Shown here: positions 21,690 to 60,987 of the stretch, one piece after another
Layout of the letters: the number at the start of each line of letters is the position of its first letter
Numbering within the stretch: the first letter of the stretch is position 1
From: Pecten maximus
Lineage: Eukaryota
DNA: 64,000 nt
Reading direction: 5' to 3'
Assembly (NCBI RefSeq): GCF_902652985.1
Contig: NW_022979575.1
Location: forward strand, 1-64,000
Position numbers and translations under genes: made by a program
The notes under the pieces: model-generated
Told to the model about the DNA's origin: nothing
Databases searched by the model: none
What the model saw: the letters and a program-made list of their open reading frames with translations, nothing else

Positions 21690-21730
21690 TTCTGATTGGC
21701 TGACGAATCAGTGTACATAACCAATAGACG
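21690..21730. promoter_or_regulatory. Putative Pol II promoter: opposed CCAAT boxes in a CpG-richer patch
   Basis: ctgattggctg at ~21692 and aaccaatag at ~21719. A minus-strand splice donor lies at 21352-21353. Function is inferred. Confidence 0.35.
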
Positions 21731-22131
21731 TTTTGCATACTTCCCCTCCGCCCTCTTTGATCCAGGTCATTTGCCGCAGGTCAAAGGTCAAACGGTTAAA
21801 CTTTTCCCAGCAACAACACTGGAACACTACGGAGTTTAGCTGCGATAACGTAGCTCTGGACGACGGACGGACAATTTCTGAAAGATGGTCGTCGTCAGAG
21901 CTACGATTCCCTCCCATTGCTCGTAATGTAGCAAAACGGTTAAACCTCGAAAATGCTACAAATAGCGGATATTGTTTAATTTTGGAGTAATAGTAATAAG
22001 TAGTAATAGTAAATAAGGGATTTCCGCCGTGACGTCACGAAAAGTCACGTGACACGACTGGTTGGCAAAAGTGGTTGTTTACAAAATGGCTTCCCATTGA
22101 TTGAAAAGAACGGCGTTTCATCCGAATTAAG

Positions 22132-25100
22132 ATGGTTGTCTCGTGTTGGGTGATTAACTGTGCAAACAGATTTGACAAAGCAGACCCTAAGAGTTTTTAT
22201 AGAATACCTAAGAAGCCTGATCAGCGCAGGGAACTGTGGATTAAAGCAATCAAGCGAGTGACCAACGACGGTCAACCCTGGATCCCCTCTGACCATGATC
22301 GAGTTTGCTATCTGCATTTCATTCAGGGTATGTAGTTAACCATTAATAATCCAAGTCAATTTTCAGTGAAATATAATATACATGCCACTTGGGTGTGCCT
22401 AATGAGTGTCCTGTGAGGAATGAGTGTCCTGTGAGAGTTTTTTCACGCCCCGCAATTCGTTAAGTGATATTTTTAAATATTTTTTTCTGTATCATACAGA
22501 TGAACATCGAACCCATTAACATGCAAAATTTGACTTTGATTGGACGTGTGCATATTATGCATTTTTAACGACATAGTTACGGTGCAGTGCACATGCGAGT
22601 GTCCTGTGAGGTTTTCGCACGCCCCGCAATTCATTAAACGATATTTTAAAATTATTTTTTCTGTATCATACAGATGAATATTAAACCTAATAACCTGCAA
22701 AATTTGACTTTGATTGGACGGGTGCATAACATGCAAATGTAACGGCGAAGACGAAGTAACGGTGCCATAAAACTGCGAGTGTCCTGCGAGGAATGTGACC
22801 TGTGAGGAATGAGTGTCCTGTTAGTGTTTTTGCACGCCCCGCAATTCATTAAATGATATTTTAGAATTATTTTTTCTGTATCATACAGATGAATATCTAA
22901 CCTATTAACATGTAACATTTGACTGTGATATAACGAGTGCATACTATACAAATGTACCGGCGAACACGAAGTTACGGTGCCATAAACATATGAGTGTCCT
23001 GTGAGGAATGAGTGTATTGTGATTGTTTTTGCACGCCCCGCAACTCATTAAATGATATTTTAGAATTATTTTTTCTGTATCATACAAATGCACATTGAGC
23101 CTATTACCATGCAAAAGTTGACCTTGATTGCACGAGTGCATATTATATAAATGCACCGTCAAAGTTACATTGCAGGGTGTCCCGCGAGGTGTTCGCACGC
23201 CCCGTGATTTTGTTTACCTTTCGAATACAGTGTGTACTAGGCTAACTAGCTATATATAGTGAGTGTCCTGTGGCGCCGTGCCAACCTCGGGTACCTTGCC
23301 GCAGGCATGGTCACTGGTGATTGAACTGCTCAAACTTCAAAACTATGTCCGTTATATAAGAAATACAAATACACCTATTTTCTCCCAAAGTCCGTTTATA
23401 AGAATTATACAATAAATAACTTTATTACGCCTGAAATATACGTATTTTCTCCCCAAGTCCGTATATAATAATTAAACATGTATATGTATATAAAGTGAGT
23501 TAGTTGGCATCACTAATCAATTCATATACACTGTACTGTTAATTACCTTTTGAAAAAGGAACGATGTAAACAAATAATTATGGTTAATAAAATATAATGA
23601 AAAGTAAAATCCTTCAATATTTAACTAACGCTCACGATCAACATGTACACCAAGAAAATGCACAGTCTTAACTTTTAATGTAATTTCTAATTACACGTAT
23701 TTAGTAAAAGTGCAAATACACTGTCTACATCGTTAACGCACTTTAAAGTTTAAATACATTTAAACATATAATTGACGGCAGTACTGCTTTTCGTACATTA
23801 CCAATAACAGTTGTTTTTAACATTTAAAATTTAAGGCCTTTATTTCGTAGAGCAGCGCAAAAATCTTAACCTATTTACCCTTTACTCAGTGATGACTTCA
23901 AAATAGTTATACTATTAGTTAATATTCATATATATTACACGCCTATCAATTCAACAAAACGTGCAAAAAACTGACATGACACTCACCTTAAACTTACTGT
24001 AAATTCGTCGTAGCATTTATTTTATCCAAATATATTTTATTGACAAAAAGTACAGGGGGATTTGGCACAAGTTTTTGCAACTTATCAACGCCCTTTCCCA
24101 AAACAAATACAAAATTACAATATTTGACAAAATAAAGACTAAAGGTCACCAATTCAATATTTTTGTAATATCTTTGTAACATTGCTCTCCGATTTGTCAA
24201 GCGGCAGGAAGTACAGAACAAACAAATATCATGCATTTTAAAATCTATTACTTGTTTTTCGTAGCATTTGCTAAAATGTACTTGTTGATAGTAATAGACA
24301 TCGCGTATATGTACGAATTGTGGGGTGTGCAAAAACCGCACTGGACACTGCACCGAAAATGAATAAATTTTCGATGTTCATCTGTATGGTACAGAAGGAG
24401 TTAACAGAAAGTACTACTTATCGAATTGTGGGGCGTACAAAAACTCTCACAGGACACTCATTCCTCACGGGACACTCATTCCTCACAGGACACTCATTCT
24501 TCTCAGGACGCTCACATGTGTAATGCATCGTAACTTTGGCGGTACATTAGCATAATATGCACACGTCCAATCCATGTCAAATTTGGCAGATTAATCGGTT
24601 AGATGTTCATCTGTATGATACAGAAAAAAATATTTAAAAATATCACTTAACGAATTGCGGGGCGTGAAAAAATTTTCACAGGACACTCATTCCTCACGGG
24701 ACACTCATTCCTCTCAGGACGCTCACATCGTAACTTTAGCGGTACATTAGCATAATATGCACACGTCCCATCTAAGTTAAATTTGGCATATTAATCGGTT
24801 AGATGTTTTTCTGTATGATACAGAATTTTTTTTTTTTAAATATCACTTAACGAATTGCGGGGCAGATCAATCGATTAGATGTCCATCTTTATTATACAGC
24901 AAACATAATTTTAAAACATCAGATAATGAATTGCGGGGCGTGAACAAAAACGCTCAAATTTTATTAACATGACAATATATCACCTGTCGACCTGTTTGTG
25001 ATTGTACATTACAAGTTTTCAGACTGAGATTAACAAATTCTATGTATTAATAACAGTTTACCATTATATTTGGTTATATATTATGTACAAGTTATATTGT

Positions 25101-28100
25101 TCAATTCTATATTAATACGTCTAACTCAAGTAGCTTAAACAATGCATTAAGTTATCATATGTGCGTAAATTACATGTAAAAGGAGCAGCACAAACCGGCC
25201 CGCACATTTAAGAAAAAAAGGTTTCAGCAGTTTAATTAACAGTGATCCATGCCTGCGGCAAGGATATATAACTAACACGTCAAGGTACCCGAGGTTCGCA
25301 CGGCGCCACAGGACACAGGTGGTACATGTGTATAACCATCGGTAAATGGGGCGTGCGAACAAATTGATCAGCACCGTACGTAACTTTGTCGTAAAAAATG
25401 CATCATATGCACACGTCCAATCGAAGTCAAATTTGGCATGGTTATGGGTTAGATGTTCATCTGTATGAAACAGAAAAAAAAAATTAAAAATATCACTTAA
25501 CGAATTGCGGGGCGTGTAAAATCACTCGCAGGACACTCATTCCTCACAGGACACTCGCGTGTGTAGTGCACCGTAACTTCGCCGATAGATTTGCATATAT
25601 TTGCATTATATGCCCTTGTCCAATCATAGTCAAATTTTGCGTGCTAATATGTTCTATGTTCATCTGTATGCTAGAGAAAAAATAATTTTAAAATGTCTAT
25701 TAATGAATCGCGGGGCGTGAAAAAACTCTCACAGGACACTCATTCCTCACAGGACGCTCACATGTGTAATGCATCGTAACTTTGCCGGTACATTAGCATA
25801 ATATGCACTCGTTCAATCAAAGTCAAATTTGGCAAATTAATCGGTTAGATGTTTATCTGTATGATACAGAAAAAAATATTCGAAAATGTCACTTAAAGAA
25901 TTGCGGGGCGTGAAAAAACCTACAGGACACTCGCATGTGCGCTGCACCGTAACTTTGTCGTAAAAAATGCATAATATGCACACGCCCAATCAAAGTGAAA
26001 TTTGGCATGGTAATGGGTTCGACGTTCATCTGTATGATACAGTAAAAATTATTTAAAAATATTACTTAACGAATTGCGGGGCGTGAAAAAAGTCTCACAG
26101 GACACTCATTCCCCACAGGTCACTCATTAGGTGGACCGTGCCACTTAAGTAAATTTGAAACCGAAAAGGCAGTATGTTGTTGCTGTTAGTCCACAGACTA
26201 CAGACTGAGTGTGCGCTGGGCTGTAATCACTGGTTGACATCGAAATGTGTCGCGTTATGACTTCTAGCTACCCTTATAAGTAATAACAGGCCTGTATGTT
26301 ATAGGCCTAATGTTAGCTTTATAGGCTAAGATCTGACGGGGTTCCAGAGTGGGTAAACATTTAACGTATATTACAAACAACGATTTGTAGATTATGTATA
26401 TATCTATCAGTGTACAGTACTGATTTCATCCACAATCGTGTATCATGTGTATATGATTATTCATTTCATTTGTGTTTACCATAATTACTGACATGATTTA
26501 GAAAAAAAAATTATATATGCACAGGATATCAATGTAAATTTAAGGGGTGGGTGGTGGTATGTGTACATGGGTCATTTCTCAGTTTTGGAGATAATTAAAA
26601 CACTAGAACAATTTTGATTGTGAACACTCTGACTCTGCAAATGTACAGGGAAAGTGTTGCATAAATTTGGGCAGAGAGAAATAATTCTTCTTATTCATGA
26701 AGTAGCAGTAATTATTATAAATTGGAAATCAAAATTTATTAATTGAATTTTCTTTTTTAATAGGTGAGAAGAGCAGTGACAAACACAGTCCTGATTATGT
26801 CCCTTCTGTGAACATGGGTTATAAAGTTTCTCAAGTGAGAGGAGATCTCCGCTTTGCCAGACACAAAAGGGTTGATAATAGGACAGCTGAGAAGGAGAAG
26901 CGAGATGTAGCTGCTGCTCTGTTAGATTTGTCAAACAAAGAAAATGCACCTGAACCTGAAGGTATTGATATTTTTTCAAATAATGTTAAGTACATAGTTG
27001 AAATATCACTGACATGATTTAGAACAGGTAAAATAATGACTTGGTTGATTTGTTATTTTAACAAAGTCCACAGACAATTTGTCTACAGAAAATTGAAATC
27101 CCATAGCCCAAATCATTTTTCTATAGACCCATTTTGTAAACATAATGTTGAAAGTAGCATAACTGTCACGCAAACACTTGCATCATCCAGTTCATACTCA
27201 CTTAATTTTTTTTCAGATTTTCTATAGTCTCTGACTATTGGACCACCTTTACTTTCAAACACAAATTTCATTAATTATATGAACTTACTTATAAAGTAAT
27301 GACTAAAATAAAACCTTTGAAATGACAAATGAATTTGATTTTACATGATGCACACACATATATCAGGGTGGATGAATTATGTACTCACTGTTTTTAATAA
27401 ATTCAATTTCAGAACCTCAGCCATATGTTGACTGCCATGAGACATGTATAAAGAAAATAGCAGATCTTCGCATCGAAAATCAGCAACTTCATGGTGAACT
27501 TGCTAGGCTTCAAGCTGAAAATGAAGAGCTGCTAAAGAGAACTTCCACTATGGATTTTGCAGACCAAGTGCTAATGACAGACCGGAAAACTTCATTTTAC
27601 ACTGGGACATCTTCAGCTGTGTTTATGTGGTTACTCTCATTCTGTTCTTGTATTCTGCCCACATGTAAAGTTTTGACTCCAAAGAGCATACTTTTGTGTT
27701 TACTAATGAAGTTGAGACTTAATCTTCAGCACCAAGATTTGGCCTACCGCTTTAATGTGTCCGTCACCACAATATCGGAAGTAATGAACCAAGGCCTGCC
27801 AAAACTTGCAGAAAAATTTGCTTTCCTAATTCAATGGCCAGACAAAGAGAGTTTGATAAGGAGCATGCCAAGTGTATTTAAGAAAATCTATCCGAAATGT
27901 GTCAGTATCATTGATTGCTTTGAAGTGTTCATCCAGAGGCCTGGACAGTTAACAGCTCGATGCCAAACATGGTCAAACTATAAACATAATAACACCGTGA
28001 AATTTCTAGTCTCAATAGCGCCTACTGGTGCTATCACATATGTGTCTAAAGCCTATGGTGGAAGGACATCTAACAAAGTTATCACCCAGAGAAGTGGATA

Positions 28101-28413
28101 TTTAGACAAACTTGTGCATGGGGATCAAGTATTGGCAGACAGAGGATTTTTAATCTCGGAAGATGTAACAAGTCGCAATGCCTCACTGGTTATTCCTGCT
28201 TTCACCAAAGGGAAATCACAGTTAAGTGCTAAGGAGGTTGAACAAACACGCAAAATTGCTCATGTGCGCATTCATGTTGAACGGGCAATAGGGAGACTAA
28301 AAAATTACAATATTCTGAGCAGTTCATTGAGTATGCACATGGTTCCTCACATTGACAGCATTGTAACTATATGTTCATCTCTTTGTAATTTGCAACCAAA
28401 GCTAGTTACATAG
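22132..28413 (+). CDS. THAP-domain DDE transposase (DDE_Tnp_4, ISL2EU type), 3 exons, 464 aa
   Basis: Exons 22132-22327, 26764-26961 and 27413-28413 with GT-AG introns and matching phases (1395 nt). THAP C2CH finger (CWVINC..RIP..W..VCYLHF..DYVPSV), coiled coil, HTH (DLAYRFNVSVTTIS), catalytic IIDCFE / ADRGF / HVERAIG. Confidence 0.92.
22391..26138. mobile_element. Foldback-type non-autonomous element (Merlin-like, 8-bp TSD) in transposase intron 1
   Basis: Absent from copy 2, whose empty site reads tacatgccacttaag at ~52780. TSD TGCCACTT. Ends GGGTGTGCCTAATGAGTG / CACTCATTAGGTGGACCG. ~170-200-bp modules are arrayed in opposite orientation in the two arms. Confidence 0.85.
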
Positions 28414-29240: not shown

Positions 29241-31664
29241 TTAACTGTCACATGATGTACAGAACCATTTCCCTCTTGGCTTTCTACGAATATTTACACA
29301 TTTGTAGTGGAACCACTGGTAGGGACAGTCATTACTGTCACACTTGATCATCCTCCCGTATTCTGGTTCAGAACATAAACACCAGGTGTCTTCGTTGTTG
29401 AGAGGAGTATCAGCTGTAGCACGTGAAATCACGCTTTCCAGTTGGCGGGTTATCAGTTCCTGTTGAACATGCTTTTTCATGAACAGTTCACATTTTCCCA
29501 CAACATTCTTACAAAAGTTAATGTCAATCGGAACACGCACAATAACCATGCTTGGCGCAGGTTTACACTTTGTGTACACCACAAAATCACAATATGTGTA
29601 ACCACAAATAGCCATTTGAAATTGGACTTGTGTATAATACCTGTGTGTTGTTTTCAGGTGCAGGCTGGAATCCAGGCAAAAGTCTTTGTCAGTTGCAGCA
29701 GCAGTCTGCACAGTAGAGTTCCTGTGTTTGAATGGGCACTTGATTTCCAGTGTTCCCTTTCCACAACACTGACAGTTAATAATTCCATCAGGACTGGCTC
29801 CGAGAAATGGGTGTTTATGATTGATGTTAAATCCCGACTCCTCACAGTGGAATTCAATGTGTTGATGAGCAGAGTGTTTGGTGTACAAAAGTCTGCACTC
29901 GTCTTCATTTTCTATACCCCATCTCACGGAGTCTTTTTTGGAAAGATCATACGTTGAGTATCCCATGATTCTCTTAACCAGGTTGTCTGGGGATGTGGTG
30001 TCCTTTCTTACTAGAACATCATGTGCCTTGGATGCAGTTATCCTGCCCATCCTATGTTGGTACCACAAAGGGCTAACTGCCTGGTTCCTGGTGGCCTTCT
30101 CTAGGTTATGACATTGAGCCTCTGTCACCACATATTCAAACAATGTCTTTTTGCTCTCCTCACTAGTTGAGTCACTGATTGTTGTCAATAGCACCGGGTA
30201 TTTTTCCTTTGTCGTGACGTTCTGTTCAATCAGATGCATGTCAGAATCATTGTCATTAACATCAGCAATAGTGACACATGTGAAAAAAGCAGCATTAGGA
30301 ACTATGGAATACAAGTCCTGTAGGTCATGTTTTGGTGGTAGTGGGGCTGATCCATTTGCCTGAACAGACTGTATTTCCCTGGTTCGCTTACCCTCGATGT
30401 CATCAAATATTTCGGATATCGTTGCGGGTTTAATCTAAAAAAACATTACAAATGTGTAAGATTCCTGGTTTTGATATAGCTGACAAGAAAGATTATACCA
30501 CAAGCCATATATATGGATATTTAATGAGCAGTGATCATGACTTAATCAAAATCGTCACTGACATAACATATATCATGTTTTCAGGCTGTTATAAATGCAT
30601 AAAGAGTTCATTATTGAACTTGGATAAAGGCTCTATATTACAATGATATTAGCACATTTATAGACTGCATTTTTATGGAAAGATGTGTTCTTATAATACT
30701 TACTTCCTTTCGAAAAGAGGTGTTCCACTGACAAGCCTTGCTGGTCGAGCTTGTCTGAGTGACACCAATCTTGACACCAATTTCAATCTTAAATAGAAGT
30801 GCTCCAACATGACTGCACACTTCACCCAACCTGAAAAATGAAGAAATAAAATAAAATTAATATGTGAAATGCAATGTTTTATAATAAATAATTCAAAATC
30901 CCTGATTATGTTCAATATTTTTTCTAGTTCCGTCAGAGAGATCACCTAGTTTGCATGCTCCATACATGTTTTGATGGAGTTTAGTTTACTTCATTTCATT
31001 AAATTTATATGTTTTCCTCGTTGTAATGGAAGCTGTATGTAATTGATAAAGCATTTGCATTAGAGCTCAAATTATACAGATACAGAATCTTTATTTAAAA
31101 GTCGAGCATGTTTGACATGTTACACAAGCTGATAAGTTTTGAAGAGCTTGTATTCGACATGCAAATTTGAAATATGGAGTAACATAATGTATTAAATGAA
31201 AACATACCCTGCCATACATGTGCAATGAGCACAGTAAACTGTACCACTGGATTTCTGCAAGTAAACCCATGGTTCATGAGGCTTGTCTCTTGCATGTTGT
31301 GAAGGAGTCACCTTGGCCTTTAATGCAACAAAAGGACAGTCATCATCAATTGGATTTGAAATGACTACTTGCACGTGACCACTAACCACATACCTGAAAG
31401 AAAATAAAAACAAAAATCAGTTTATGAAAACAAGGTGTACACTAATCACAGGGGCATGTCTTGTTTTATATTACAAAAAATATTCAGAAATACCTATATA
31501 TATTGACAATATATATAGGTATTTCTGACTATTTTTTGTTATATAAAACTAGACATGCCCCTGTGCACTAATTAAGGTCTAAACAATAATATACATGTTT
31601 CTGGTAACATGACATGAAAATATATTGGGTAGGTAGAACCAAGATCTTATAGGTAGGTGATTTA

Positions 31665-31699
<35 letters not shown>

Positions 31700-32316
31700 C
31701 TGAAATCATATAGACAAGCAAGCAATCTTGACAATGATAGACAATGAGAGGGGGTGGGTAGGGTTCACGGAAACACCTGTAATTTTTAGGCCTTAGCTAA
31801 TCAGAATCAAAACGTCACATGTACAGTACAGCTATTTACTTCGCCCCGTTACATTTTTTCGCTGACATTTTGAATTTATCACGTGACTCCATTGTATAAA
31901 CACACCTGCAATGACATGCTACCTAGCCTAGACCTCGTTAGGTTGGAACAATATTATACTTCTTCCTGTAGATCTTATATAGAATTTATTATTTTTTATT
32001 CACTGAAAAACACTTTAACAGCATATTATGAAACTTACTTGTATGAATCAAGCGATTTGTATGCCTTCATCGACTCCTTCGTGTAATTCGACGGGGTGTC
32101 AATCAAATAAAGGTAGATGTCGCCAAAGGTAAGATCAGGCCACGTGTTGGGATTTGTTGACCACTTCTCACTGATTTTGTACGGATCTGGTAGAGTCTTT
32201 GTACCACTGTCATATTTAAGCTTTCTGCAATACCTTTCACGAGCTTCCGTTGAAAGGCTGATAGCGTAGTCAGACAGGTAAACAGAGAAATCGGAGTTAA
32301 CCTTGCCCTTGGCCAT
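29241..32316 (-). CDS. SWIM zinc finger + YqaJ/lambda-exonuclease-like nuclease + ING-type PHD finger protein, 4 exons, 594 aa
   Basis: Exons 32316-32039, 31393-31208, 30830-30704 and 30434-29241 (1785 nt, open). SWIM CTCMAGLGEVCSH. YqaJ motifs WYQHRMGRITAS, WGIENE, LGASPDG, LEIKCP, YYTQVQFQM. PHD WCLC..YGRMIKCD..C..WFHYKC..GKWFCTSC. Confidence 0.92.
31447..31565. mobile_element. 119-bp palindromic P-like MITE in intron 1 of the YqaJ gene (also at 59186-59304)
   Basis: Same family as 16322-16438. 7-bp TSD CACTAAT. Confidence 0.9.
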
Positions 32317-32436
32317 TGTTATAATGCGACACGCTTACCTGAGGCGTGTTCAGGATGGCGAGCGATCGCGCGAGCGCTCTCGTGATAATAAATCGGCGAT
32401 CCTGAACGGTAGTGTGCGCTCACGCATGTATTCAAA

Positions 32437-35400
32437 ATAGCGGCCTCCCGTGCTGTTGCACTACAATTTCTGTTAACGGAGTTCGAAACTCCACCACAGT
32501 ATGAGAGCGACGGTCTTTATAAAGAAGCCAGCAACATTATACCCGCTATTATTGCTTCTGGTACTTCGGGTGAGCCTCTTGGGACAACCAGAATAGAGGA
32601 TTATGTGGAGAAGACTGTTCCCCAGTACAGCGACCCTCTGTTCAAGGCACATTTTCGAATGACCAGAGCATCATTTGAGGTGAATAAAAATAACCACAAA
32701 GCACAGCCTGCACTCTATCGTCCAATCACAAATTACAACAAACCCATCAGAATCTAGGGGCGGGGCTTACCATCAGTCTATCAGTCACCACAATTGGCTG
32801 CGCCGTACATTAGATACATTGTACATTGGATAGTTTTGCTTGATATATCCCAGTCGCAAATGACGCTGACTAAATAATTGTTTTGTCGCGTTGTGATTTT
32901 AATTTTCGCTCTACTTTGTAAAATTGATGATGAATTTCATGATGTAAAATTATTAGAATGTCCAGAATTTCGTATCCAAAGAAAATTATTGCTTCATAAA
33001 TACTGTTGTGAACGAGTCAATATTTGGAAATTTTCTTCTGTAATTAATTGCCTAAATACAAGAAAGCTAATGTATTAACGATAAAGTATGGTCTCCTGAA
33101 AATGTGTAAATTTAAAACTATAATAAAGTTCTGTTCCTTACAGTTACGGTTAAAGTTTTCTTTCTGGATTTTCTTGCATTTACTCTCCCATTAATTCATT
33201 GACCGTGGATTTAAGTGTTTTTGAAATGTATGTATTCTGCACGTCAATCCCTAGGTTTAGTCCTACTCTATACCAGCGGATACCCATTTATAGTATTTAT
33301 ATTTATAGTATAGGCGTATACTTTACGAAATGTAAATATATGATCATCTTATCTAAATTAAAGTGCTAAAATATTTATGTGCAGCAACTGTTTACAACTA
33401 TCTAAACATCCCATATTTTAGCATGCTTAAAACAACGACAAAACAAATTATTCATCTACAAAGATATAGAAAATATAAGTGCTAGATCACAAATTTTCTC
33501 TGGCTTTCTTTTTATTCAAGAAAACAGTAGTCATTGAAGATAACAAAAATCAGGCTTCATATATATATACCAAAACATTTTCTTTGAAACGGAAGCAAAT
33601 GTCTCTAAGATAGGCCCACGTCCTCATTTTACGTGTCAAATTCAACAACGGATATCCTAAAAAATGAAAGAGGAAAACAAATCCTAATTTACATGAAGAG
33701 TTCATAACTATGAACACATGTCACACCATTAGGGTAATTGGAGATTATAATAAAGAATAGCATAAAGAATAGTATGTCGCACGTGAAAATGACATCCCTC
33801 CGTGTTCACATTACAAATCATGTTATATCCTAATTCACTAATTATCAACTAGTAGAATCCAAATAATTCGGGAGTTTTCACCGTTAAAAATTAACACAGT
33901 TCCTGGGAAGGTGAATGATATATAGAGGTTACACAACGAATGGTTGTTGGATATGGAATTCATTTCACACGAGTAGGTTATTTTTTAAAGTTACAAAAGA
34001 CACGAGCTTTAGCGAGTGTCATTTGTAACTTTTAAAAAATAACTTGCGAGTGTGAAATGAATTCCATATCCAACAATTACGAGTCGTGTAACCTCTTAAT
34101 ATCATTCACCTCCCCAGGAACTGTGTTAATTTTAAGGTGTACAAGTGACGGCCGGGACCCGATGTGACGTCATTCGATTAATGATGACGTCATAACAATT
34201 GCAGTTCGGGTCAAAGTTCGAATTCCTGACCAATCAAAATATCGGAAGGTCATATAAATAGAGGTTACACAACGAGTGGTTGTTGGATATGGAATTTATT
34301 TCACACGAGTAAGTTATTTTTTAAAAGTTACAAAAGACACGAGCTTTAGCGAGTGTTTTTTGCAACTTTTAAAAAATAACTTACGAGTGTGAAATAAATT
34401 CCATATCCAACAATTTCGAGTCGTGTGACCTGTTTCTACCACAATAATATCGGTTTGAATCAAAGGGAAACGTGGCCAAGTATAATTTCATGTATGCAAA
34501 TAAAGTGTACCGGTGACGTCCGGGACCCGGTGATGTGACGTCATTAGATTATTGATGACGTCAATAACAATTGCAGCTTGGGTCAAAGTTCACCGTGTTA
34601 GCCAATCGAAATGCGTACAGAGTTTATACCACGTGTGGTATAAACAGATTGTTAATCAACAGCTGTAATGATTAACTGATGGTCTGAGAGTTGAATAACA
34701 CAGGGTATTGTGGTAGAAAATATATTTATCCAACAGTTTATAAATGACCTGAGAGTGGAATAACAAAGGGTATTGTGGTAGATATATATATATACGTACC
34801 CGATTAACACTTGATTATCCTGCTAGGTTTACCTTACCTAAAGCCAAAGGAAATTTCCAGCGAACTTTAGAGTCTTGTTTAACAGCGTGACATTTAGCAG
34901 AGTGACACTTAACTGTCATTTGCGAACATAGTATCAGTTAACAGCTTCTCTGTATTTTGGCTCTTCAGCTTACGAACATGATCCTTTCCAATATTTTTTG
35001 TAAAAGTCTAGTCATTTTAACTCTAGATCTTCAGAGCGGTCTCAAGTTGATAGACAATCACTTTCACTTGGTGTTAATTAGATGGGTTAATTGGTAAACA
35101 CGACATTTTGATTGGTCGCTACGGATGCACAATGCTGCTTTTTCCGATTGAATGTAGCCGTGACCACGTGTACGTCACCTGTAGGCAGGATAATTACACG
35201 TTAGGGCATCTTGGATTTAATAGTGGATGGAGCTTAACGCTAGGCTTCACAATTCTTTACTAAAAGTAACTTGTTATACTGATGAATCACTGCAATTCGA
35301 TATCGGTTGATGGAAGTCCCGCCCCTACAGTTTGTACTTTTTTTGAAATTTTATCATTGGGTTCAAAATTGACGATCAATACTCAATAATTGAAACATCT

Positions 35401-35921
35401 TGAGTGGATTAATAACATTAACATGTAGAAATGCTGTTTCATCAATTCACTTAATTTATGAATACCAAAATATTGACCCGTTTTATACGTCCTCATACAC
35501 GATTTCATTAATGCTGATGAACCAAACAGTTTAAAGTAAAAAAATCAACTGAACTATAGCTGACAGTGCCTTAGGATAAACACACATAAACTCTCGTATT
35601 ATTACGTCACGTCATTGTCCAAATCATGACGTCACAATCGATTTCATACTGGCAAAACCAATGAAATCCATACAGAATACAACACTACGTCTGTCCGTCC
35701 TACAGGGACCTGGGATTTAATTACAGTGTACATTTATTTGGACATATCATAGTGTCTTTAGAATATTTCAAGACGTTTGGGAGGTCTAAACATTTTATAA
35801 TTTTTTTTTTTAATTGTTTAATTTTTCAAGATTTTTTTTCATAAATACAAAACATTTGAAACATATATGCACATACATTCTCACTCTTACACCCACAGTA
35901 ACTATACTCATGATTCAATAA

Positions 35922-35960
<39 letters not shown>

Positions 35961-36053
35961 ACATAATCAAACATCATCATCATCATATCAGCATCATCAT
36001 CTTCATCATCATCCTACTCCTCCTCCTCATCATCATCGGTTCATCACCACCAC

Positions 36054-36085
<32 letters not shown>

Positions 36086-37989
36086 CCATTCATTCATCAT
36101 CATCATCATCATCAAAAGAATCACACTTAATCATCATCATCTATCATGATATCATCATCCATACTTAAATCATTTTCATTTTTTTCATCACAATAAAACA
36201 TCATCATCCTTATCATCACACAAAAAACATCATCTTCATCACGATTATTTTAAGCTTGAACCACAAGCCTCACATCTACTTACATTATTACATATTAATT
36301 AACACACATATATAACCTAACCTAAATTTATACAGAGTGAGAAAGAAGCAGACAGACATACCATCACACAGACAAGACAGACAGATAGACACAGACAGAC
36401 GCACCATTACACAGACAGACACACACACACACAGACACCGACAGACACACACATAGACGCATCATCACACAACACAAAACGGACAGACGCACAGACAGAC
36501 GCATACTCGGACACACCATCACACATAGAACGCACACACACACACACAAAAATAAACACGACTGAAGCATGGGAGAAAATTTCTTTAAATGGTAAAAATA
36601 AAAAGTAATGGAAAGGAGCTAGAAACAGGCGATGTCAGTCTTTTATAATTTTTATAATTTGATAAAAATGTATACCTTTGCGTGTTATACATGTATGAAC
36701 AGAATGGACATTCATGAATATTCACGTAGAGGTATAATTTTAATCTGGACCTCCTTGATATCATAGGATAGGTCCAAATACATGTAGACTGTAACCAATT
36801 CCCATGTCTCAATTCTTGTACCCGCTATTTCTCAAAAAGTCATGCAGATCTCTCTCTCAAATTTCACGTGTAGGTTCTCCTTGACACAGGAACCTGCTAT
36901 AAATGATGAATAACATATATAGATCGATACAGTAGCATGTGAGCCATTCGACCTTCCTTAGTTTGTCGACTGATAATTATTTTTAAGACAATAGAAATTG
37001 TTTGTTACAAGTACACTAGTAGATATCCGTATGCAGCTTACATTATTTTTTATTTAACACTTTGTCTATTTCGTTTACAGGAGCTATTGGAGCTTGTAGG
37101 TCCACGTACTGAGGTGAAAACAATATCTTTGGAAAGAAGAACGTTAGCATGTGTGTGGTACCTCAGCAACCAGGAAACATTCAGAAGTATTGTAGACAGG
37201 TTTGGATTAAGTAAGGGATCCCTACATTATTTTTTGAGAAAATTCTGTAACATTATTACGAGCAATGAAATACTCCAGCAGTTGATCCGCTGGCCAAGTA
37301 GTGATTCGGAGTTCCAAAATATATCAGAAAACTTTACGCAGAGGGCAGGTTTCCCAAATGTAATTGGTGCACTAGATGGTACTTATATCCCTATATTAGG
37401 ACCAACTGCATTTCGCGAGTCCTATATCTGTAGGAAAGGCTTTCCTGCCCTTCACCTTCAGGCTGTTTGTGACACCGATTTGAAATTTTTGGATGTGTTT
37501 TGTGCCTATCCCGGATCTGTTCATGATTCAAGGGTGTTTAAAAACAGTCCTCTATATACGGAACTTCAGAACAACCCTGTTCCGCGACAATATCATTTGC
37601 TAGGAGATTCCGCATATGGCAATTCGGAAACTGTTTTGGTCCCCTTTAGGGACAACGGTCACCTCAACGCCGATGAGAAAAGGTATAACAATGCCCACAG
37701 TTCGACAAGAGTCGACATAGAACGCAGCTTCGGGCTACTGAAAGGAAAGTTCCGGAGATTAAGATACGTTGAGATGAAGAGGGTTGAGGACATACCAAGT
37801 TTGGTTGTGACGTGTTGTGGACTCCACAATTTTATTATTCAGAGGGAAAGATACACAGATGAAGACATAGACATGGATGCTGCTGATGGTGATGGTCCCC
37901 CTGGAACCTGCAGTGTAGCACGTGATACTGGCGCCGTGGATAAATCTGGACATGAAAAGAGGCTTCAGGTCATGCACAGTCTACAATAA
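32437..37989 (+). CDS. Harbinger (HARBI1-like) DDE transposase, 2 exons, ~383 aa; start codon appears mutated (ATA)
   Basis: Exon 1 32437-32679 ends FKAHFRMTRASFE|gt. Exon 2 37081-37989 is phase 0 and has GALDGTYIPI, YICRKG, PGSVHDSRV, LLGDSAY and DIERSFGLLKGKFR. Confidence 0.88.
33887..34432. repeat. Two related long hairpins (~33887-34132 and ~34260-34432) in the Harbinger intron
   Basis: gaggttacacaacga..gttggatatggaatt...cacgagctttagcgagtg...aattccatatccaac..gtcgtgtaacctc occurs twice. Confidence 0.8.
35921..36240. repeat. (CAT)n microsatellite / low-complexity tract
   Basis: Long runs of catcatcat. Confidence 0.95.
36348..36548. repeat. (CA)n/(CAGA)n microsatellite
   Basis: cagacagac and cacacac runs. 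Confidence 0.9.
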
Positions 37990-49567: not shown

Positions 49568-52528
49568 AATAAAAGGCAACAAAAATATTAATCCTTGTCC
49601 ACTTGTTGTACAGAGTAAGGGTACGTGATTTCATACAGGACGTGATTTCGTACAATAAATTGTTTTTTCCAATGTTTCAATCGATCGCCTGCGATGAAGG
49701 CTTAAAATCATTTCGATGGCAAACAACCGCCATAGTCTCTCTTCGGTGAAGCTAAATATAGAATTTCAGAATAACCTCATTTTCAAAACGAAACTAGAAT
49801 TTGCATTTTGTCGTCTGCAGAATCGGACCAGGGTAGCTTAAAAACATAATTTGAAATATAATCTAGCCAGCTGACCTATGATAATTTTGAGATAATTGAA
49901 ATAAGATCATACTTTACCATTTTCATCAAAATTGTTTTAATATGAAGCTCAAATAATTTGATAACACCGTATATTGATGTAACAAGCCCAATCATCGACA
50001 GGGCAGATATCGTAGGGAGCCTTCATTATTCCGAAAATGGTTGACATGATTGATTGTTTTTTGGTCTTAAAAACTGTATGGAGCTTTAAAATTGTTTATT
50101 ACAATTCTAGCCAGATAATCCTTATAAACAAAAATATATATAGTAAGTGCTATATTCCCACAGAATGGGTCGATGGCATGCTAAAAGTGACACGTTTTTT
50201 TTCAAAAGTTCATATTTCTTTCAAAAAACATTTCTGTCGTTTGAAAATCGGCAGACCTGATTAAAATATGCTGAATTAAATCTGCATATACTTATATTTG
50301 CCATATTTACTAAGAATCACACATTTGAAGGCTGTACGAAATGACGTTCCCAACTGCCGCTAAACACAGAAGTAAAGAATGGTAAAGGAAAGATCCCCTG
50401 CGCAGTGCATTTCTGCGCATATGACGTCACATTACCAAAAATATCGCAGATTGTGTACATCTTTTAGGTCGATGTAGATAAAAACGTCTTCTAGCTGCAT
50501 TTAAGAAAAAAAATGCAAATATATGTGAAAAGTGTACGAAATCAGGTACCCTCACTCTATTATATGTTATAGATCTTTGTAACAACTATTGTGACCTTCC
50601 ATATCAATAGCAAAATTAAGGTATTGAAAATTGTGAGAAGTAAAAGTTATATATTTTGAAGATAAAGGTCACTACACTGTCTAAGATACGAGTGAAAAAA
50701 ACCCACCATTTTCCTAAGGTATGGATAAAAACCACACCTGTTCAAAAGTTATCTGGAGCACTGCAGATTAGCAGCAGGTCACATATATGATAGTACTTTT
50801 TTGTGACCAACTGGGATGGGGAACCAGTCTGTCTCTGAGGACAAGGTTATATCTCTTATCAAATCAATTGATAACAGCTTGGTATTCCATTAATTTGCAT
50901 CAGGAATGTTTGCAGAGTTTAAGTAAGATATTCATTGTACCCGCACATACAATATTGTCTAATAATTGGCCTACTGTAATCACAATGTATGTAGCTATTC
51001 CTCAACCGAATTACATCAAATGATTTATATTAGAATTTGTATTTTAAAATGCTACAACTTTTAAGTGATTACATTGTTGTACTAGGTTATTATCTTATTA
51101 TTGGTTAGAATCGCGTCACTTGATAAATATACTGTTTGATTAAAATGAATAAACTTGTACATTATAAATAAAATTAGCTCATTATTGTTAGTTAGAATCA
51201 GGTCACTTGATAAATATACTGTTTGATTAAAATGAATAAACTTGTACATTATAAATAGAATTAGCTCATTATTGTTAGACAAATAAAGTTACTACCTGGT
51301 TTATATGTGTTTTTTAAGTAGGCAATATTTAGTCCAAATCTCTAAAGTATCATGCAAACTATGACTAGGCCTATGTAATATAAATTATAATGTGTTCCCT
51401 CCATCCCCCTCTCCAAAATGTCAGCGGTCCATTACCTGATCCAAGACTCAGCTGGTGGTGATCACAACGATTCCGTTAATAAAAAAAGGTGGGGGTTGAG
51501 GAAAAACCTTCCAAAGATTTTAATTTTTAAATCTCTAATTTAGGGGGTTTATGATGAACTATAATGAATCACAGAGCTTTAGTGTAGTCTATATATTACA
51601 TTTTTTTCGGAGGAGAACCCCCGAACCCCCTCACCCGGATAAGTAGAGCCGCAAAAACCCAACCCCTTCTCAAAATCCTGTATCCGCCTCATTATAACAC
51701 ACTAAACATCGGGTATCTAGGTAAATAATCTGTTTACCTCCAGCAAACGGCGTTGTTCCATGTCCAGCAAAGCCAGGTGCCGATGTTGTTGAGTGTCCAG
51801 GGCAGTCTGAGTCTCCGACGAATGTTGGAGCAGACGTTAACAAATATGCCTAAGCTTAGTGCCTAGATCTACTCCAAATCCAAACTGTGCCCCTAGTTAA
51901 GTTAGACAAGATATATGATATACTTCTCTGGTTAGTACTAATGACATGATGAATACATCGTCGGATGTTACTGTGTTTGGGGTTTCCCTCGACTGGTAAC
52001 ACAGAGTACGCAAAACCCATGTTGATGTTGATGTTGCTCCACACAGCCTGCCAGGGACACTCAACAGACAAAACGTTTCTGATTGGCTGACGAATCAGTG
52101 TACATAACCAATAGACGTTTTGCATACTTCCCCTCCGCGCTCTTTGATCCAGGTCATTTGCCGCAGGTCCAAAGGTCAAACGGTTAAACTTTTCCCAGCA
52201 ACAACACTGGAACACTACGGAGTTTAGCTGCGATAACGTAGCTCTGGACGACGGACGGACAATTTCTGAAAGATGGTCGTCGTCAGAGCTACGATTCCCT
52301 CCCATTGCTCGTAATGTAGCAAAACGGTTAAACCTCGAAAATGCTACAAATAGCGGATATTGTTTAATTTTGGAGTAATAGTAATAAGTAGAAAATCTAG
52401 TAATAGTAAATAAGGGATTTCCGCCGTGACGTCACGAAAAGTCACGTGACACGACTGGTTGGCAAAAGTGGTTGTTTACAAAATGGCTTCCCATTGATTG
52501 AAAAGAACGGCGTTTCATCCGAATTAAG

Positions 52529-55500
52529 ATGGTTGTCTCGTGTTGTGTGATTAACTGTGCAAACAGATTTGACAAAGCAGACCCTAAGAGTTTTTATAGA
52601 ATACCTAAGAAGCCTGATCAGCGCAGGGAACTGTGGATTAAAGCAATCAAGCGAGTGACCAACGACGGTCAACCCTGGATCCCCTCTGACCATGATCGAG
52701 TTTGCTATCTGCATTTCATTCAGGGTATGTAGTTAACCATTAATAATCCAAGTCAATTTTCAGTGAAATATAATATACATGCCACTTAAGTAAATTTGAA
52801 ACCGAAAAGGCAGTATGTTGTTGCTGTTAGTCCACAGACTACAGGCTGAGTGTGCGCTGGGCTGTAATCACTGGTTGACATCGAAATGTGTCGCGTTATG
52901 ACTTCTAGCTACCCTTATAAGTAATAACAGGCCTGTATGTTATAGGCCTAATGTTAGCTTTATAGGCTAAGATCTGACGGGGTTCCAGAGTGGGTAAACA
53001 TTTAACGTATATTACAAACAACGATTTGTAGATTATGTATATATCTATCAGTGTACAGTACTGATTTCATCCACAATCGTGTATCATGTGTATATGATTG
53101 TTCATTTCATTTGTGTTTACCATAATTACTGACATGATTTAGAAAAAAAAAATTATATATGCACAGGATATCAATGTAAATTTAAGGGGTGGGTGGTGGT
53201 ATGTGTACATGGGTCATTTCTCAGTTTTGGAGATAATTAAAACACTAGAACAATTTTGATTGTGAACACTCTGACTCTGCAAATGTACAGGGAAAGTGTT
53301 GCATAAATTTGGGCAGAGAGAAATAATTCTTCTTATTCATGAAGTAGCAGTAATTATTATCAATTGGAAATCAAAATTTATTAATTGAATTTACTTTTTT
53401 AATAGGTGAGAAGAGCAGTGACAAACACAGTCCTGATTATGTCCCTTCTGTGAACATGGGTTATAAAGTTTCTCAAGTGAGAGGAGATCTCCGCTTTGCC
53501 AGACACAAAAGGGTTGATAATAGGACAGCTGAGAAGGAGAAGCGAGATGTAGCTGCTGCTCTGTTAGATTTGTCAAACAAAGAAAATGCACCTGAACCTG
53601 AAGGTATTGATATTTTTTCAAATAATGTTAAGTACATAGTTGAAATATCACTGACATGATTTAGAACAGGTAAAATAATGACTTGGTTGATTTGTTATTT
53701 TAACAAAGTCCACAGACAATTTGTCTACAGAAAATTGAAATCCCATAGCCCAAATCATTTTTCTATAGACCCATTTTGTAAACATAATGTTGAAAGTAGC
53801 ATAACTGTCACGCAAACACTTGCATCATCCAGTTCATACTCACTTAATTTTTTTTCAGATTTTCTATAGTCTCTGACTATTGGACCACCTTTACTTTCAA
53901 ACACAAATTTCATTAATTATATGAACTTACTTATAAAGTAATGACTAAAATAAAACCTTTGAAATGACAAATGAATTTGATTTTACATGATGCACACACA
54001 TATACCAGGGTGGATGAATTATGTACTCACTGTTTTTAATAAATTCAATTTCAGAACCTCAGCCATATGTTGACTGCCATGAGACATGTATAAAGAAAAT
54101 AGCAGATCTTCGCATCGAAAATCAGCAACTTCATGGTGAACTTGCTAGGCTTCAAGCTGAAAATGAAGAGCTGCTAAAGAGAACTTCCACTATGGATTTT
54201 GCAGACCAAGTGCTAATGACAGACCGGAAAACTTCATTTTACACTGGGACATCTTCAGCTGTGTTTATGTGGTTACTCTCATTCTGTTCTTGTATTCTGC
54301 CCACATGTAAAGTTTTGACTCCAAAGAGCATACAGTCAAATCTGTCTATAGCGACCGCCCAAGGGGAGGCAGAAAAACGGTCACTATAGACAGGTTGCCT
54401 TTATAGACAGGTCAAAATTATTGCACCAACCAATTTACTTAAACCTGCCATAAATAAATTGTCATTGAACAGGGCATTCAGAAGACCAGTCAGAAGTTAA
54501 ATAAATGCATAAACTTTATAAATCTGAAGGGTTTGATATTTAATGATTTGTGGACCCAAACACAAAATATAACTCAAAATGGTCTTATGGATAATTTTTT
54601 TTTAAATATTTTGTTCTGAAATAATGCTATATGTATCTATCAAATTATCTCCCTTTCTTTCATAAATAAAGAAAAAGAATACACAATAATTAATAAATTA
54701 ATTATATTTGTGTTACTACTAATTATTTTGTGTTATAGTCTTACCTCTTAAAACCAAAATATTTTTTTTTCTGACCCAAATTGAAATCCGGATATTTGTG
54801 TCAGTTTACGACTTTTTATTAGTATTGACTAATTAAAGATGGCGGCAGTACAAACGCTAGTACCGACAGCTACGATTAAGAAAGGCATTATTGGCTTTCA
54901 TGTGAGTAAATCTTGTTGACAGATATGACCAGTGTTTGTTATTGAAGTGATGTATCCTAGTTGTAATCACAAAATTAACTGACCGTGTCAAATGAAGCCA
55001 CCTGTGCACAGTTGCAATGTAATACCGACACGCATGGTGACCCGACTCCCCTCTTACCGAGCCCCAGGCCAGGGCAGCTACAGTAATTATAGGCTAACAG
55101 GTGGTAGGGGTCTTTTGTTTGTATACTCAGGCCAGGGTTGTGGTGGTCCTTTGTTTGTATAATCAAGCCAGAGTCGATGTGTCTGAATTTTCCGGGGATT
55201 TTATGAGGGATGACTGCCGAGAGCAGAAGATGGCTGACAGAAATCGGTCGCTATAGAAAACAAATTAGCGACCGCCGTTCCGAAATCACCGGTCGTTAGC
55301 CACATTAGACAGGTAGTCGCTATACAGAGGGTCGTTATATAGTAAAATCTCACGGGGAATCTTAAAACCGGTCGTTATAGACAGGCAGTCGTTATATACA
55401 GGGGGTCGTTAGAGCAGGTTTGACTGTACTTTTGTGTTTACTAATGAAGTTGAGACTTAATCTTCAGCACCAAGATTTGGCCTACCGCTTTAATGTGTCC

Positions 55501-56150
55501 GTCACCACAATATCGGAAGTAATGAACCAAGGCCTGCCAAAACTTGCAGAAAAACTTGCTTTCCTAATTCAATGGCCAGACAAAGAGAGTTTGGTAAGGA
55601 GCATGCCAAGTGTATTTAAGAAAATCTATCCGAAATGTGTCAGTATCATTGATTGCTTTGAAGTGTTCATCCAGAGGCCTGGACAGTTAACAGCTCGATG
55701 CCAAACATGGTCAAACTATAAACATAATAACACCGTGAAATTTCTAGTCTCAATAGCGCCTACTGGTGCTATCACATATGTGTCTAAAGCCTATGGTGGA
55801 AGGACATCTGACAAAGTTATCACCCAGAGAAGTGGATATTTAGACAAACTTGTGCATGGGGATCAAGTATTGACAGACAGAGGATTTTTAATCTCGGAAG
55901 ATGTAACAAGTCGCAATGCCTCACTGGTTATTCCTGCTTTCACCAAAGGGAAATCACAGTTAAGTGCTAAGGAGGTTGAACAAACACGCAAAATTGCTCA
56001 TGTGCGCATTCATGTTGAACGGGCAATAGGGAGACTAAAAAATACAATATTCTGAGCAGTTCATTGAGTATGCACATGGTTCCTCACATTGACAGCATTG
56101 TAACTATATGTTCATCTCTTTGTAATTTGCAACCAAAGCTAGTTACATAG
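52529..56150 (+). pseudogene. THAP-DDE transposase copy 2, disrupted
   Basis: Exons 52529-52724, 53406-53603 and 54055-56150. Exon 3 is split by the MITE at 54333-55426 and has a 1-bp deletion near 56043. Confidence 0.9.
54333..55426. mobile_element. pogo/Tigger-like MITE (1094 bp) in transposase exon 3
   Basis: TA|CAGTCAAATCTG ... CAGGTTTGACTG|TA. Copy 1 has the empty site agcatacttttg at ~27690. Confidence 0.92.
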
Positions 56151-56979
56151 TGTATATATGTGCATGTGGCCTTTTACCTTTGATGAATGTTATTGTATAG
56201 AGGCATGTACATAGCCTTCAATTTGGACTGAATTATTCCAGATAGATACATGTAAAATGCAACAGAACATTGACCAATATATATGTTTGCTCTCATGTAA
56301 AAGATTTTTTGTGCATGTGATGTGAATTAAATTTGATTAATTTAAAATTCTTGTTGTTGTTTTCTTTCTAAGGTATGTATATCTACAATACATGTTATAC
56401 TGTTAAATATATGATTCTTAAGAGTATACATACATAAAACATTAAAAAAAAATGCCTTTGTCTGCTAACCTGATCAACCCCTATTTTTGAGCAAACAATT
56501 TTAATATTCCACGAATGATCTGAAGTCAAAATTTAATGTATATAATATATTCAGTATATATTTGAATTGAATATTAACGTAGAAATATATGGGGAAGGCT
56601 AGCGGAAAACCATGCATTTTTTTTTAACAATTATCAATGTATGAAAAATATAACAGAAACCACAGTATGCTGCTCCAATATATTTTAATTTGTATTTTCC
56701 CTAATAATTATATGAACATGGTCATATGTGTATCCAAACATTACTGTATTTCTAATTCACAAATCATTATAATTATGATCCGACTCATGATACAGTATTA
56801 TCAAAATGAACATTATGAATCAAGAATTGATGACAGACTTGTATTCACTACAAGGTAAACTATTTTGCAGCATAATATATTTCAATTTCACACTTTCAAT
56901 TTAATAACTTGTTACTAAGAGTTCAATATTCAGTTCACATTCAAGCCTATGATTTAAAGCTCCACACAGTTCTGAAACT

Positions 56980-59859: not shown

Positions 59860-60987
59860 CAGAGACATATATACAGAGAGATTAGTAACATCGCTATTTC
59901 CCCGTACAGATAGTGGCTCCCTTTATTCGTGACCACTCAAGCATATCCCTTATCGAGAGCGTCCTGTCTCCTATCAAACACACGCGAGCGCAGGTAAATC
60001 GGGCTATGCGCATGTGTGTATCGTAGTATTGGAACTTATTCGACATGTTCTGGTTAATCCGCCATTACGTCAGACCAAAACATCGTCATTTTAAATACAC
60101 ACAGAAAGCACATCGTTTTATTTTGGCCACTACAAAAGTTACCACATTAACCAAAAACTATCAAACTTATGGGATATAGTCTTATTGATCATGCATATTG
60201 TTGTCATTTATCCGTATTTTCGAAAATCCATTGGGTCCTATTCGACATGCCCAAGTTTGTAATTAAGCCGCCATTACGTCAGACCAAAACATCGTCAATT
60301 TTAAACGCACACAAAAAGCACATCGTTTTATTTAGGCCACCACAAAAGTTACCACATTAACCAAAAACTATCATACTTATGGGATATAGTCTTATTGATC
60401 GTGCACATTGTTGCCATTTATCCGTATTTTCCAAAATCCATTGGGTCCTATTCGACATGTCCAAGTTTTGTAATTAAGCAGCCATTACGTCCGACCAAAA
60501 CATCGTCAATTTTAAACGCACACAAAAAGCACATTGTTTTATCTAAGCCACTACAAAAGTTACCACATTAAGCAAAAACTATCATACTTATGGAATGTGG
60601 TCTTGATTATCATGCACATTGTTGTCATTTATCCGTATTCTCGAAAACCCCATAGGGACTTTTCGAAAATTGGAGATTCCCGCCGATCTTTCCTGCGTTG
60701 TGCTTGACTTTCATACTCAAAATACAAACACTTGGACAGCAAATTGTGATATATTTCATATTGATGACACTTCTGCACTTTGATATTAATAAAATTAAAG
60801 CACATAATTGGATCTTGGTGATGATTTCAAATAGAAATTATCGATAATTATGTGTCTGGTTTTCAAGTTTTCTCCAATATGGCGTCTAGTTAAGACTGAA
60901 CCGAGTGACCGCAAAGGATTGTGGGAAGGTCAGGGGCCACTATGTAAACACAAGGGCAAATAGAGAGCTGCCAATCTCTCTGTATAT
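59860..60987. mobile_element. P-like non-autonomous element with ~205-bp internal repeats; right TIR interrupted by Gypsy
   Basis: Starts CAGAGACATATATACAGAGAGATT. Its partial inverse AATCTCTCTGTATAT ends at 60987. Repeats begin at 60038, 60240 and 60450. Confidence 0.8.

Follow-up and report, generated by a model that had tools for sequence, protein, structure and literature searches.

The first 64,000 nucleotides (nts) of contig NW_022979575.1 of the scallop Pecten maximus (NCBI RefSeq assembly GCF_902652985.1), referred to below as the window, carry a DNA transposon whose second gene encodes a lambda-type exonuclease ending in a PHD finger of the ING type. Fingers of this type read histone H3 trimethylated at lysine 4 (H3K4me3). 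By its domains, gene layout and ends, the element is assigned to the ISL2EU group, of which the conserved fusion of a putative chromatin reader to a nuclease is an undescribed feature. The presence of an ING-type finger on a transposon nuclease suggests that the family senses H3K4-methylated, i.e., active, chromatin. The reading favored here, held with somewhat better than even confidence, is that the product of the second open reading frame (ORF2), or accessory protein, would be a chromatin-tethered DNA-end-processing nuclease working with the THAP-DDE transposase of an ISL2EU-type cut-and-paste element.

Gene model and domains of the accessory protein

The accessory gene is located on the minus strand, from 32316 to 29241, and is composed of four exons, the last of which encodes both the nuclease and the PHD finger:

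32039..32316, minus strand: accessory exon 1, start codon ATG included (aligns colinearly with the N-terminal part of 590-602-aa homologues; RNA joint 31393/32039)
31208..31393, minus strand: accessory exon 2, N-terminal half of the SWIM motif (RNA joint at either end; colinear with homologues)
30704..30830, minus strand: accessory exon 3, C-terminal half of the SWIM motif (RNA joint at either end; colinear with homologues)
29241..30434, minus strand: accessory exon 4, with linker, nuclease, PHD finger and stop (Pfam YqaJ 1.5e-21; RNA joint 30434/30704)
29598..30065, minus strand: YqaJ / lambda-exonuclease core (Pfam, Foldseek, VIA-align, conserved motifs)
29250..29384, minus strand: ING-type PHD finger (phmmer against solved structures; fold match; zinc ligands)

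The exon lengths of 278, 186, 127 and 1194 nts (stop included) add up to 1785 nts, i.e., 594 codons and a stop in an uninterrupted reading frame. All introns are GT..AG with consistent phases, the codons across junctions being AAG and GGG, and the translation of each exon is colinear, with gap-free junctions, with homologues of 590-602 aa from Gigantopelta, Argopecten, Mizuhopecten, Mytilus and Dreissena. RNA contigs from four public runs of three studies (two of the runs being recorded as RNA-Seq) contain exactly three joints, corresponding to introns 30435-30703, 30831-31207 and 31394-32038, and stop about 290 nts past the stop codon. Because these contigs skip exactly the three predicted introns, the gene model is correct, and transcription and splicing of the gene are established. 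Frames, homologue colinearity and RNA joints therefore bear out a first-pass annotation of the DNA, in which the four exons had been joined into an open 594-aa protein.

Exons were searched one by one, and two database proteins, P0001 and P0003, stood in for the continuous protein. P0001, the closest database protein (“uncharacterized protein LOC117318968 [Pecten maximus]”), is a 512-aa model of a 99%-identical copy, and P0003 is a full-length homologue used for fold comparisons. Genome searches covered the 918-Mb assembly of 3983 contigs, in which the window is contig C446.

In Pfam, the PHD finger scores just under the curated cut-off (4e-4). Against solved structures, the 20 best phmmer matches are all fingers of ING1-5, Yng1, Yng2, Pho23 and Png2 (E 1e-19 to 1e-11), as expected from the ING-family pattern recognized in the first-pass annotation. 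ING5, ING1, ING4, ING2 and ING3 match at 1e-19 to 1e-17 and the best non-ING protein, SPP1, at 1e-5; the family profile matches ING4 at 2.7e-24. The modelled finger superposes on the H3K4me3-bound structures of ING4, ING5 and ING2 with template-modelling (TM) scores of 0.8-0.89 and a root-mean-square deviation (rmsd) of about 2 Å (Foldseek). Fingers of the ING group share 51-56% identity with it and have the same ungapped Cys4-His-Cys3 spacing. An alignment of 88 homologues shows no change in the eight zinc ligands or in W390, and little or none in the histone-pocket residues. A chance cysteine-rich tail was considered and rejected on the E value of 1e-19 to ING fingers and on these invariant ligands. 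No segment of the protein is more conserved than the finger: mean column conservation is 0.64 there, 0.53 in the nuclease and 0.21-0.29 in the linkers.

In ING3, the H3K4me3 cage is formed by Tyr8, Ser15, Met19 and Trp31, and the Arg2 pocket by Cys22, Asp23 and Trp47, which are conserved in ING1-5 (PMC5000080). In gap-free register with ING3, the scallop finger has W, E, M and W in the cage and C, D and W in the Arg2 pocket. The cage Met and Trp and the Arg2-pocket Cys-Asp and Trp are thus common to both, whereas the scallop finger differs by a cage Trp in place of Tyr, a Glu in place of Ser and its junction to a nuclease. The retention of the aromatic (W for Y), M, D and W positions had been noted in the first pass, and the published ING3 residues agree with it; the substitution of Ser by Glu is a correction added here.

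The finger is not peculiar to the scallop copy. Of the best 120 homologues, 97 carry it, 93 matching the full motif, and those devoid of it are mostly models that are truncated or that vary in the last Cys pair; most of the family has therefore neither lost the finger nor let it degenerate. Of these 97 sequences, 90 have an aromatic residue (Y, W or F) at the first cage position, where the family consensus is Tyr; 95 have the cage Met and 91 the cage Trp, and D or E occupies the Asp position of the Arg2 pocket in 75. The cage serine is not kept, being Glu in the scallop protein and in 70 of the 97, and Ser in 7 only.

Apart from the finger, the protein does not resemble ING proteins. Neither in the exons nor in eight homologues did Pfam detect an ING N-terminal or leucine-zipper-like domain, and no polybasic tail is present. 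Two homologues from Mya arenaria bear the database name “ING4-like”, which fits the PHD finger only, an ING domain being absent from their Pfam entries. That the PHD finger can be seen in databases is apparent from automatic names, e.g., “ING4-like protein [Mya arenaria]” or “Zinc finger PHD-type domain-containing protein”. Elsewhere in the P. maximus genome (G000:C6:28850842-28850988), a PHD exon that follows a lysine-rich stretch is 51% identical to the transposon finger and, judging from its sequence, probably belongs to the host’s own ING1/2-type gene. The PHD fingers of the host ING3/4/5 are split across exons in this genome.

The nuclease is identified with more certainty by Pfam: exon 4 (397 aa) matches YqaJ at 1.5e-21 (77.7 bits for a cut-off of 22) and Viral_alk_exo at 1e-10. 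An AlphaFold model of exon 4 (88 homologues in the alignment; mean predicted local distance difference test score, pLDDT, of 87) retrieved the Laribacter LHK-Exo and lambda exonuclease with Foldseek at E 6e-10 to 5e-9. VIA-align of the P0003 model gave LHK-Exo and lambda exonuclease with Z scores of 18.5 and 18.4, followed by herpesvirus alkaline nucleases, and the family profile matches lambda exonuclease at 1.4e-11. The sequence aligns with lambda exonuclease over the WxxxRxG, SPDG and L-E-x-K motifs, the last being LEIK here and ELK in lambda exonuclease. In lambda exonuclease, the Arg of the WxxxRxG motif is the 5′-phosphate-binding Arg28. D216, K232, W124, R128, G130 and R131 are invariant in the 88-sequence alignment and E230 is nearly so. 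The motif-final Lys is the counterpart of lambda exonuclease K131, the residue mutated in PDB entry 3sm4. On alignment and model, the accessory nuclease thus has a PD-(D/E)XK fold with a complete predicted active site (catalytic Asp, Glu and Lys). It shares this fold, the catalytic triad and WxxxRxG with lambda exonuclease, LHK-Exo and the herpesvirus alkaline nucleases (Pfam YqaJ, Viral_alk_exo), and differs from them in being borne by a eukaryotic transposon, in having a putative SWIM domain and a PHD finger on either side and in lacking an annealase partner gene.

The N-terminal domain is the least certain of the three. A CxC..CxH motif straddles the exon 2/3 junction (CxC from 31224, CxH ending 30809) and is identical in 22 homologues. 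Pfam yielded no matches on exons 1, 2 and 3 taken separately and, on whole homologues, a sub-threshold SWIM match (16.6 bits) in one of eight sequences. Residues 61-177 of the P0003 model align with the SWIM region of ZSWIM8 with a Z score of 7.7 (rmsd 2.8 Å over 96 residues, 21% identity). An atlas search with the N-terminal 185 residues of P0003 returned unnamed animal clusters and one in which 12% of the members have SWIM, and several homologues carry the database name “SWIM-type domain-containing”. From motif and model, “SWIM-type” is a reasonable label, although the weakest of the three domain assignments. Hence, when the architecture first proposed (SWIM, YqaJ and PHD) was checked with HMMER/Pfam and structure prediction, by exon and on homologue models, YqaJ and the ING-type PHD were confirmed, whereas SWIM stands on the motif and a fold match.

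The transposase, the element and its relatives

The accessory gene does not travel alone. A transposase adjoins the homologue in all five loci from other species, i.e., the gastropod Gigantopelta, the tick Ixodes hexagonus, the bivalve Dreissena and the fishes Kryptolebias and Fundulus. In the first four, the adjacent gene call encodes a convergent HTH/DDE_Tnp_4 transposase, which has a THAP domain in Gigantopelta, Ixodes hexagonus and Dreissena; the Fundulus transposase has no gene call and was detected by tblastn. The THAP exon found by tblastn beside the homologues is 71% identical in Fundulus, 67% in Gigantopelta, 45% in Dreissena and 28% in the tick (E 3e-5). A second YqaJ-PHD family in the P. 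maximus genome, 34% identical and intronless, is paired with the same kind of transposase.

The Fundulus heteroclitus locus (CM022123.2; L034 9001-13359) is 60% identical to that of the scallop in the accessory protein, 68% in the DDE exon and 71% in THAP. This killifish element is as near to that of the scallop as are the elements of other molluscs, and the comparison suggests that this ISL2EU family has passed horizontally between molluscs and teleosts.

The association of a YqaJ nuclease with a DDE transposase also occurs within a single protein. An intronless 961-aa ORF of the same genome (G000:C2:2655252-2658137; L063:1753-4638, plus strand) combines a Mutator-like transposase (PF20700, 2e-82) with a C-terminal YqaJ domain (3e-13). 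Its nuclease is 29% identical to that of the ISL2EU element and keeps SPDG and LEIK, and at least nine equal-scoring copies are present. No relevant paper on a fusion of Mutator and YqaJ was found in a literature search. Because this ORF joins both activities in one polypeptide, the YqaJ nuclease would take a direct part in DDE transposition.

Such a direct part could be that of a second-strand nuclease. In Tn7, TnsA is the PD-(D/E)XK partner of a DDE transposase (PMC3424549), and the accessory protein could similarly belong to a heteromeric transposase in which cutting and joining of the 3′ ends fall to the DDE enzyme, the PD-(D/E)XK enzyme cuts or removes the 5′ strands and the PHD finger serves as an allosteric or positional license. 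The pairing in Tn7, the Mutator-YqaJ polypeptide and the conservation of the active site in 88 homologues are consistent with this proposal. However, the fold is that of the processive 5′-3′ exonucleases (lambda exonuclease, LHK-Exo) rather than of a restriction-type endonuclease, and in the related PIF/Harbinger elements the second ORF encodes a Myb/SANT DNA-binding protein and not a nuclease. A TnsA-like role is thus considered unlikely. The likeness to Tn7 is limited to the presence of a PD-(D/E)XK nuclease beside a DDE transposase: unlike the scallop protein, TnsA is bacterial, restriction-endonuclease-like and devoid of a chromatin reader, and the two show no sequence or close fold kinship.

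In the window, the transposase gene, the element ends and the sequences inserted into the element are arranged as follows:

22013..22015, no strand: left target-site duplication, ATA (ATA at both flanks, also at 41820-41822)
22016..22029, plus strand: left terminal inverted repeat (TIR), AGGGATTTCCGCCG (12/14 matches to the reverse complement of 41806-41819)
22132..22327, plus strand: transposase exon 1, THAP zinc finger (Pfam THAP 2.1e-10, 41.6 bits)
22391..26138, no strand: nested transposon X in transposase intron 1, foreign to the element (8-bp duplication TGCCACTT at 22383-22390 and 26139-26146; ~750-bp inverted ends)
26764..26961, plus strand: transposase exon 2, predicted (open frame, AG/GT boundaries, phase fitting exons 1 and 3)
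27413..28413, plus strand: transposase exon 3, HTH_Tnp_4 and DDE_Tnp_4 (Pfam DDE_Tnp_4 3e-49 over the whole profile; HTH_Tnp_4 2.3e-13)
32342..41747, no strand: nested composite insertion Z, foreign to the element (24-nt perfect TIR AGGCGTGTTCAGGATGGCGAGCGC; CTG on both sides)
41748..41819, minus strand: right terminal segment, with the right TIR AGGGATATTCGCCG at 41806-41819 (96% identity to the contig C476 copy, whose right end is intact)
52413..59862, no strand: copy B of the element, same insertion (99% identical; left flank common to copy A, 19184-22390 = 49568-52787)

The three predicted transposase exons total 464 aa. The transposase and accessory genes are convergent, with 827 nts between their stop codons. 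The transposase ATG is 116 nts from the left end and, in the uninterrupted form, the accessory ATG is about 98 nts from the right end.

The element extends from 22016 to 41819 and is bounded by 14-nt TIRs (AGGGAT...), in which 12 positions agree between the two ends. The 11-nt motif ACTGGTTGGCA is found 42-52 nts inside the left end and, in inverted orientation, 53-63 nts inside the right end (estimated chance expectation ~0.001). ATA flanks both ends as well as the single intact end on C476; as there is one complete insertion only, duplications of 2 and 3 bp are indistinguishable. A search for TIRs at and around the first apparent repeat boundaries, 26139 and 32342, found nothing because both are junctions of nested insertions (X and Z, respectively), and the true ends were located by self-comparison of the window and by comparison with the C476 copy. 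Accordingly, the convergence of the accessory gene with a THAP-DDE transposase stands as first described, whereas their inclusion in one TIR pair is true only after removal of the two nested insertions.

Without X and Z, the element is about 6.6 kb long. X (3.75 kb) is missing from copy B, and its terminal 640 bp occur in more than 100 genome copies at 97-99% identity, many beside internal tandem repeats. Z (9.4 kb), located 25 nts upstream of the accessory ATG, is missing from the C476 copy; a related copy of Z is present on C11 (L007). The C476 copy has an intact right end, and its homology to the window ends leftward at the equivalent of 26981. Two further element fragments are found on C17.

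Copy B is regarded as the same insertion, duplicated or on a second haplotype, because it shares the left flank of copy A. In copy B, a 1.1-kb insertion (54333-55427) interrupts the DDE exon and accessory exon 1 is truncated at 59862; accessory exon 4 has an open frame. The locus and its left flank are in fact present twice (18711-32138 and 47862-59862), at ~99% identity and with different nested insertions, an N run (46326-46825) lying between them. The two versions could stem from a recent segmental duplication, or else represent two haplotypes that the assembly placed one after the other on an unplaced contig. Just ahead of the N run, diverged repeats form a tandem array (44654-46152; ~82-85% identity between shifted copies). 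Within intron 1 of the accessory gene (31447-31565), a perfect-hairpin repeat resembling a miniature inverted-repeat transposable element, with 59-nt arms that are 95% complementary and 1 nt apart, is common to all three element copies and has relatives at 16313-16441.

The RNA contigs pass from 32342 directly into the terminal segment, and the expressed copies are therefore without Z. In all four runs, they reach 148 nts past 32342, which corresponds to the 72-77-nt terminal segment and about 70 nts beyond the end of the element. One RNA contig bears the copy B junction, which indicates that copy B is transcribed too.

The fact that copies crippled by nested insertions are still transcribed at this locus could be taken to mean that the accessory gene serves another purpose. 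In such an explanation, the PHD finger would not read histones, or the protein would have some other service (anti-silencing or general host DNA repair), or the gene would be an immobilized, domesticated host gene. The replacement of the cage Ser by Glu and the loss of cage residues in some lineages point the same way. However, the solved relatives above E 1e-11 are all PHD fingers of the ING/Yng family, several of them solved with an H3K4me3 peptide, and the Arg2 pocket specific for the H3 tail is kept, so that this explanation is considered very unlikely. Domestication as such was rejected on the TIRs and target duplication, the several divergent families in the genome and the transposase adjoining in five of five other species.

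Possible roles of the PHD finger and the nuclease in transposition

The favored reading, that of a chromatin-tethered end-processing nuclease, can be laid out in steps. The PHD finger would dock the accessory protein on nucleosomes bearing H3K4me2/3. As both genes start about 100 nts inside the ends and read inwards, the H3K4me3-rich 5′ nucleosomes of a transcribed copy would cover its own termini. At breaks made by the transposase, the nuclease would digest the 5′ strands, which could complete cleavage or, as is favored, resect the donor break and lead to its repair by homology.

The same domain evidence could be read as a means of target choice. In this alternative, the finger would bring the transposition complex to the H3K4me3 nucleosomes of active host promoters, insertions would be found near transcription start sites and the nuclease would process DNA there. 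Integration guided by chromatin readers has precedents in the chromodomain integrases and in the tethering of retroviral integrases by LEDGF and BET proteins. However, nothing ties ORF2 to target capture, and in the five annotated loci from other species the nearest called gene start is more than about 4 kb away from the element, one copy being intronic, although this observation carries little weight given the few and old insertions. In addition, H3K4me3 in the RAG system licenses cleavage at signal ends in active chromatin rather than the choice of a target. Target steering is rated as rather unlikely. Because the ATGs are near the ends and because of the RAG2 analogy, recognition of the donor ends followed by 5′ resection is favored over promoter-targeted insertion.

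In RAG1/RAG2 and in ProtoRAG/Transib, a DDE recombinase is accompanied by an accessory protein ending in an H3K4me3-reading PHD finger, and the two genes are convergent and, in ProtoRAG, located within the TIRs. The likeness to the scallop element is one without homology: the RAG2 core is a Kelch propeller devoid of nuclease and its PHD finger is not of the ING type, whereas the scallop accessory protein is a predicted enzyme. Neither Pfam nor fold searches detected a Kelch repeat or propeller in the accessory protein, and the resemblance to RAG2 would be functional only. The first-pass annotation had proposed a two-component, chromatin-guided system analogous in logic to RAG2, in which the accessory protein reads active-promoter marks. 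The architecture, the conservation and the two-gene logic agree with this proposal; the analogy holds as well, but it favors licensing of the donor ends over the choice of a target.

Several points weigh against the favored reading. The substitution of Ser by Glu in the cage means that, judging from the sequence, a preference for the trimethylated state is not assured. By analogy, the Glu may shift the preference towards lower methylation states; an engineered BPTF finger reportedly behaves in this way, which can serve as a lead only. In addition, a fish sub-lineage (P0092, P0116) is devoid of the cage Met and Trp, its zinc ligands being intact. The element encodes no annealing protein, the usual partner of lambda-type exonucleases. 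Transcription may also start outside the element, given that the RNA contigs extend about 70 nts past its end.

A bolder form of the favored reading, distinctly unlikely, would make ISL2EU a RAG-like two-component system. The accessory protein would sense active copies by the marks on their promoter-bearing ends, license DDE cleavage and resect the donor, which would then be repaired from the sister copy. Such a system would have arisen independently of RAG2 and would recur in the Mutator-YqaJ fusions. If true, it would amount to a chromatin-sensing, replicative form of cut-and-paste transposition.

The ISL2EU group and the significance of a putative reader-nuclease fusion

Surveys of ISL2EU elements report, besides the THAP/HTH/DDE transposase, a second ORF that encodes a YqaJ exonuclease domain, and refer to the function of the extra ORFs as unknown (PMC4482050, PMC4122938, PMC9179366), in agreement with what the first-pass annotation had stated on the group. 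According to the published description, these elements are restricted to animals, have TIRs of 6-259 bp usually starting with GG and generate a 2-bp AT duplication within A|AT|T. The scallop element shares with ISL2EU (PHIS / Harbinger-like) elements the two convergent genes, the short TIRs starting with (A)GG, the THAP, HTH and DDE_Tnp_4 domains and the YqaJ protein. Unlike in the published description, its flanks read ATA and this copy is split by two transposons, and the ING-type PHD and putative SWIM domains are unmentioned there. No open paper linking a PHD finger to ISL2EU or to eukaryotic YqaJ proteins was found.

To our knowledge, few transposable elements encode their own histone-mark reader, the textbook cases being the chromodomain integrases and the RAG2 PHD finger. 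The elements described here, present in molluscs, teleosts and a tick, form a whole group of animal DNA transposons in which an intact lambda-type exonuclease is joined to a near-canonical PHD finger of the ING type. Should the finger bind no histones, what is left is a previously unnoticed domain of a known transposon protein. With the domains in hand, the question of the ISL2EU ORF2 is now approachable by concrete experiments. The fusion would also provide a compact natural module combining a chromatin reader with a DNA-end-processing enzyme. As an independent parallel to the RAG2 PHD finger, it would bear on the evolution of the chromatin licensing of DDE recombinases.

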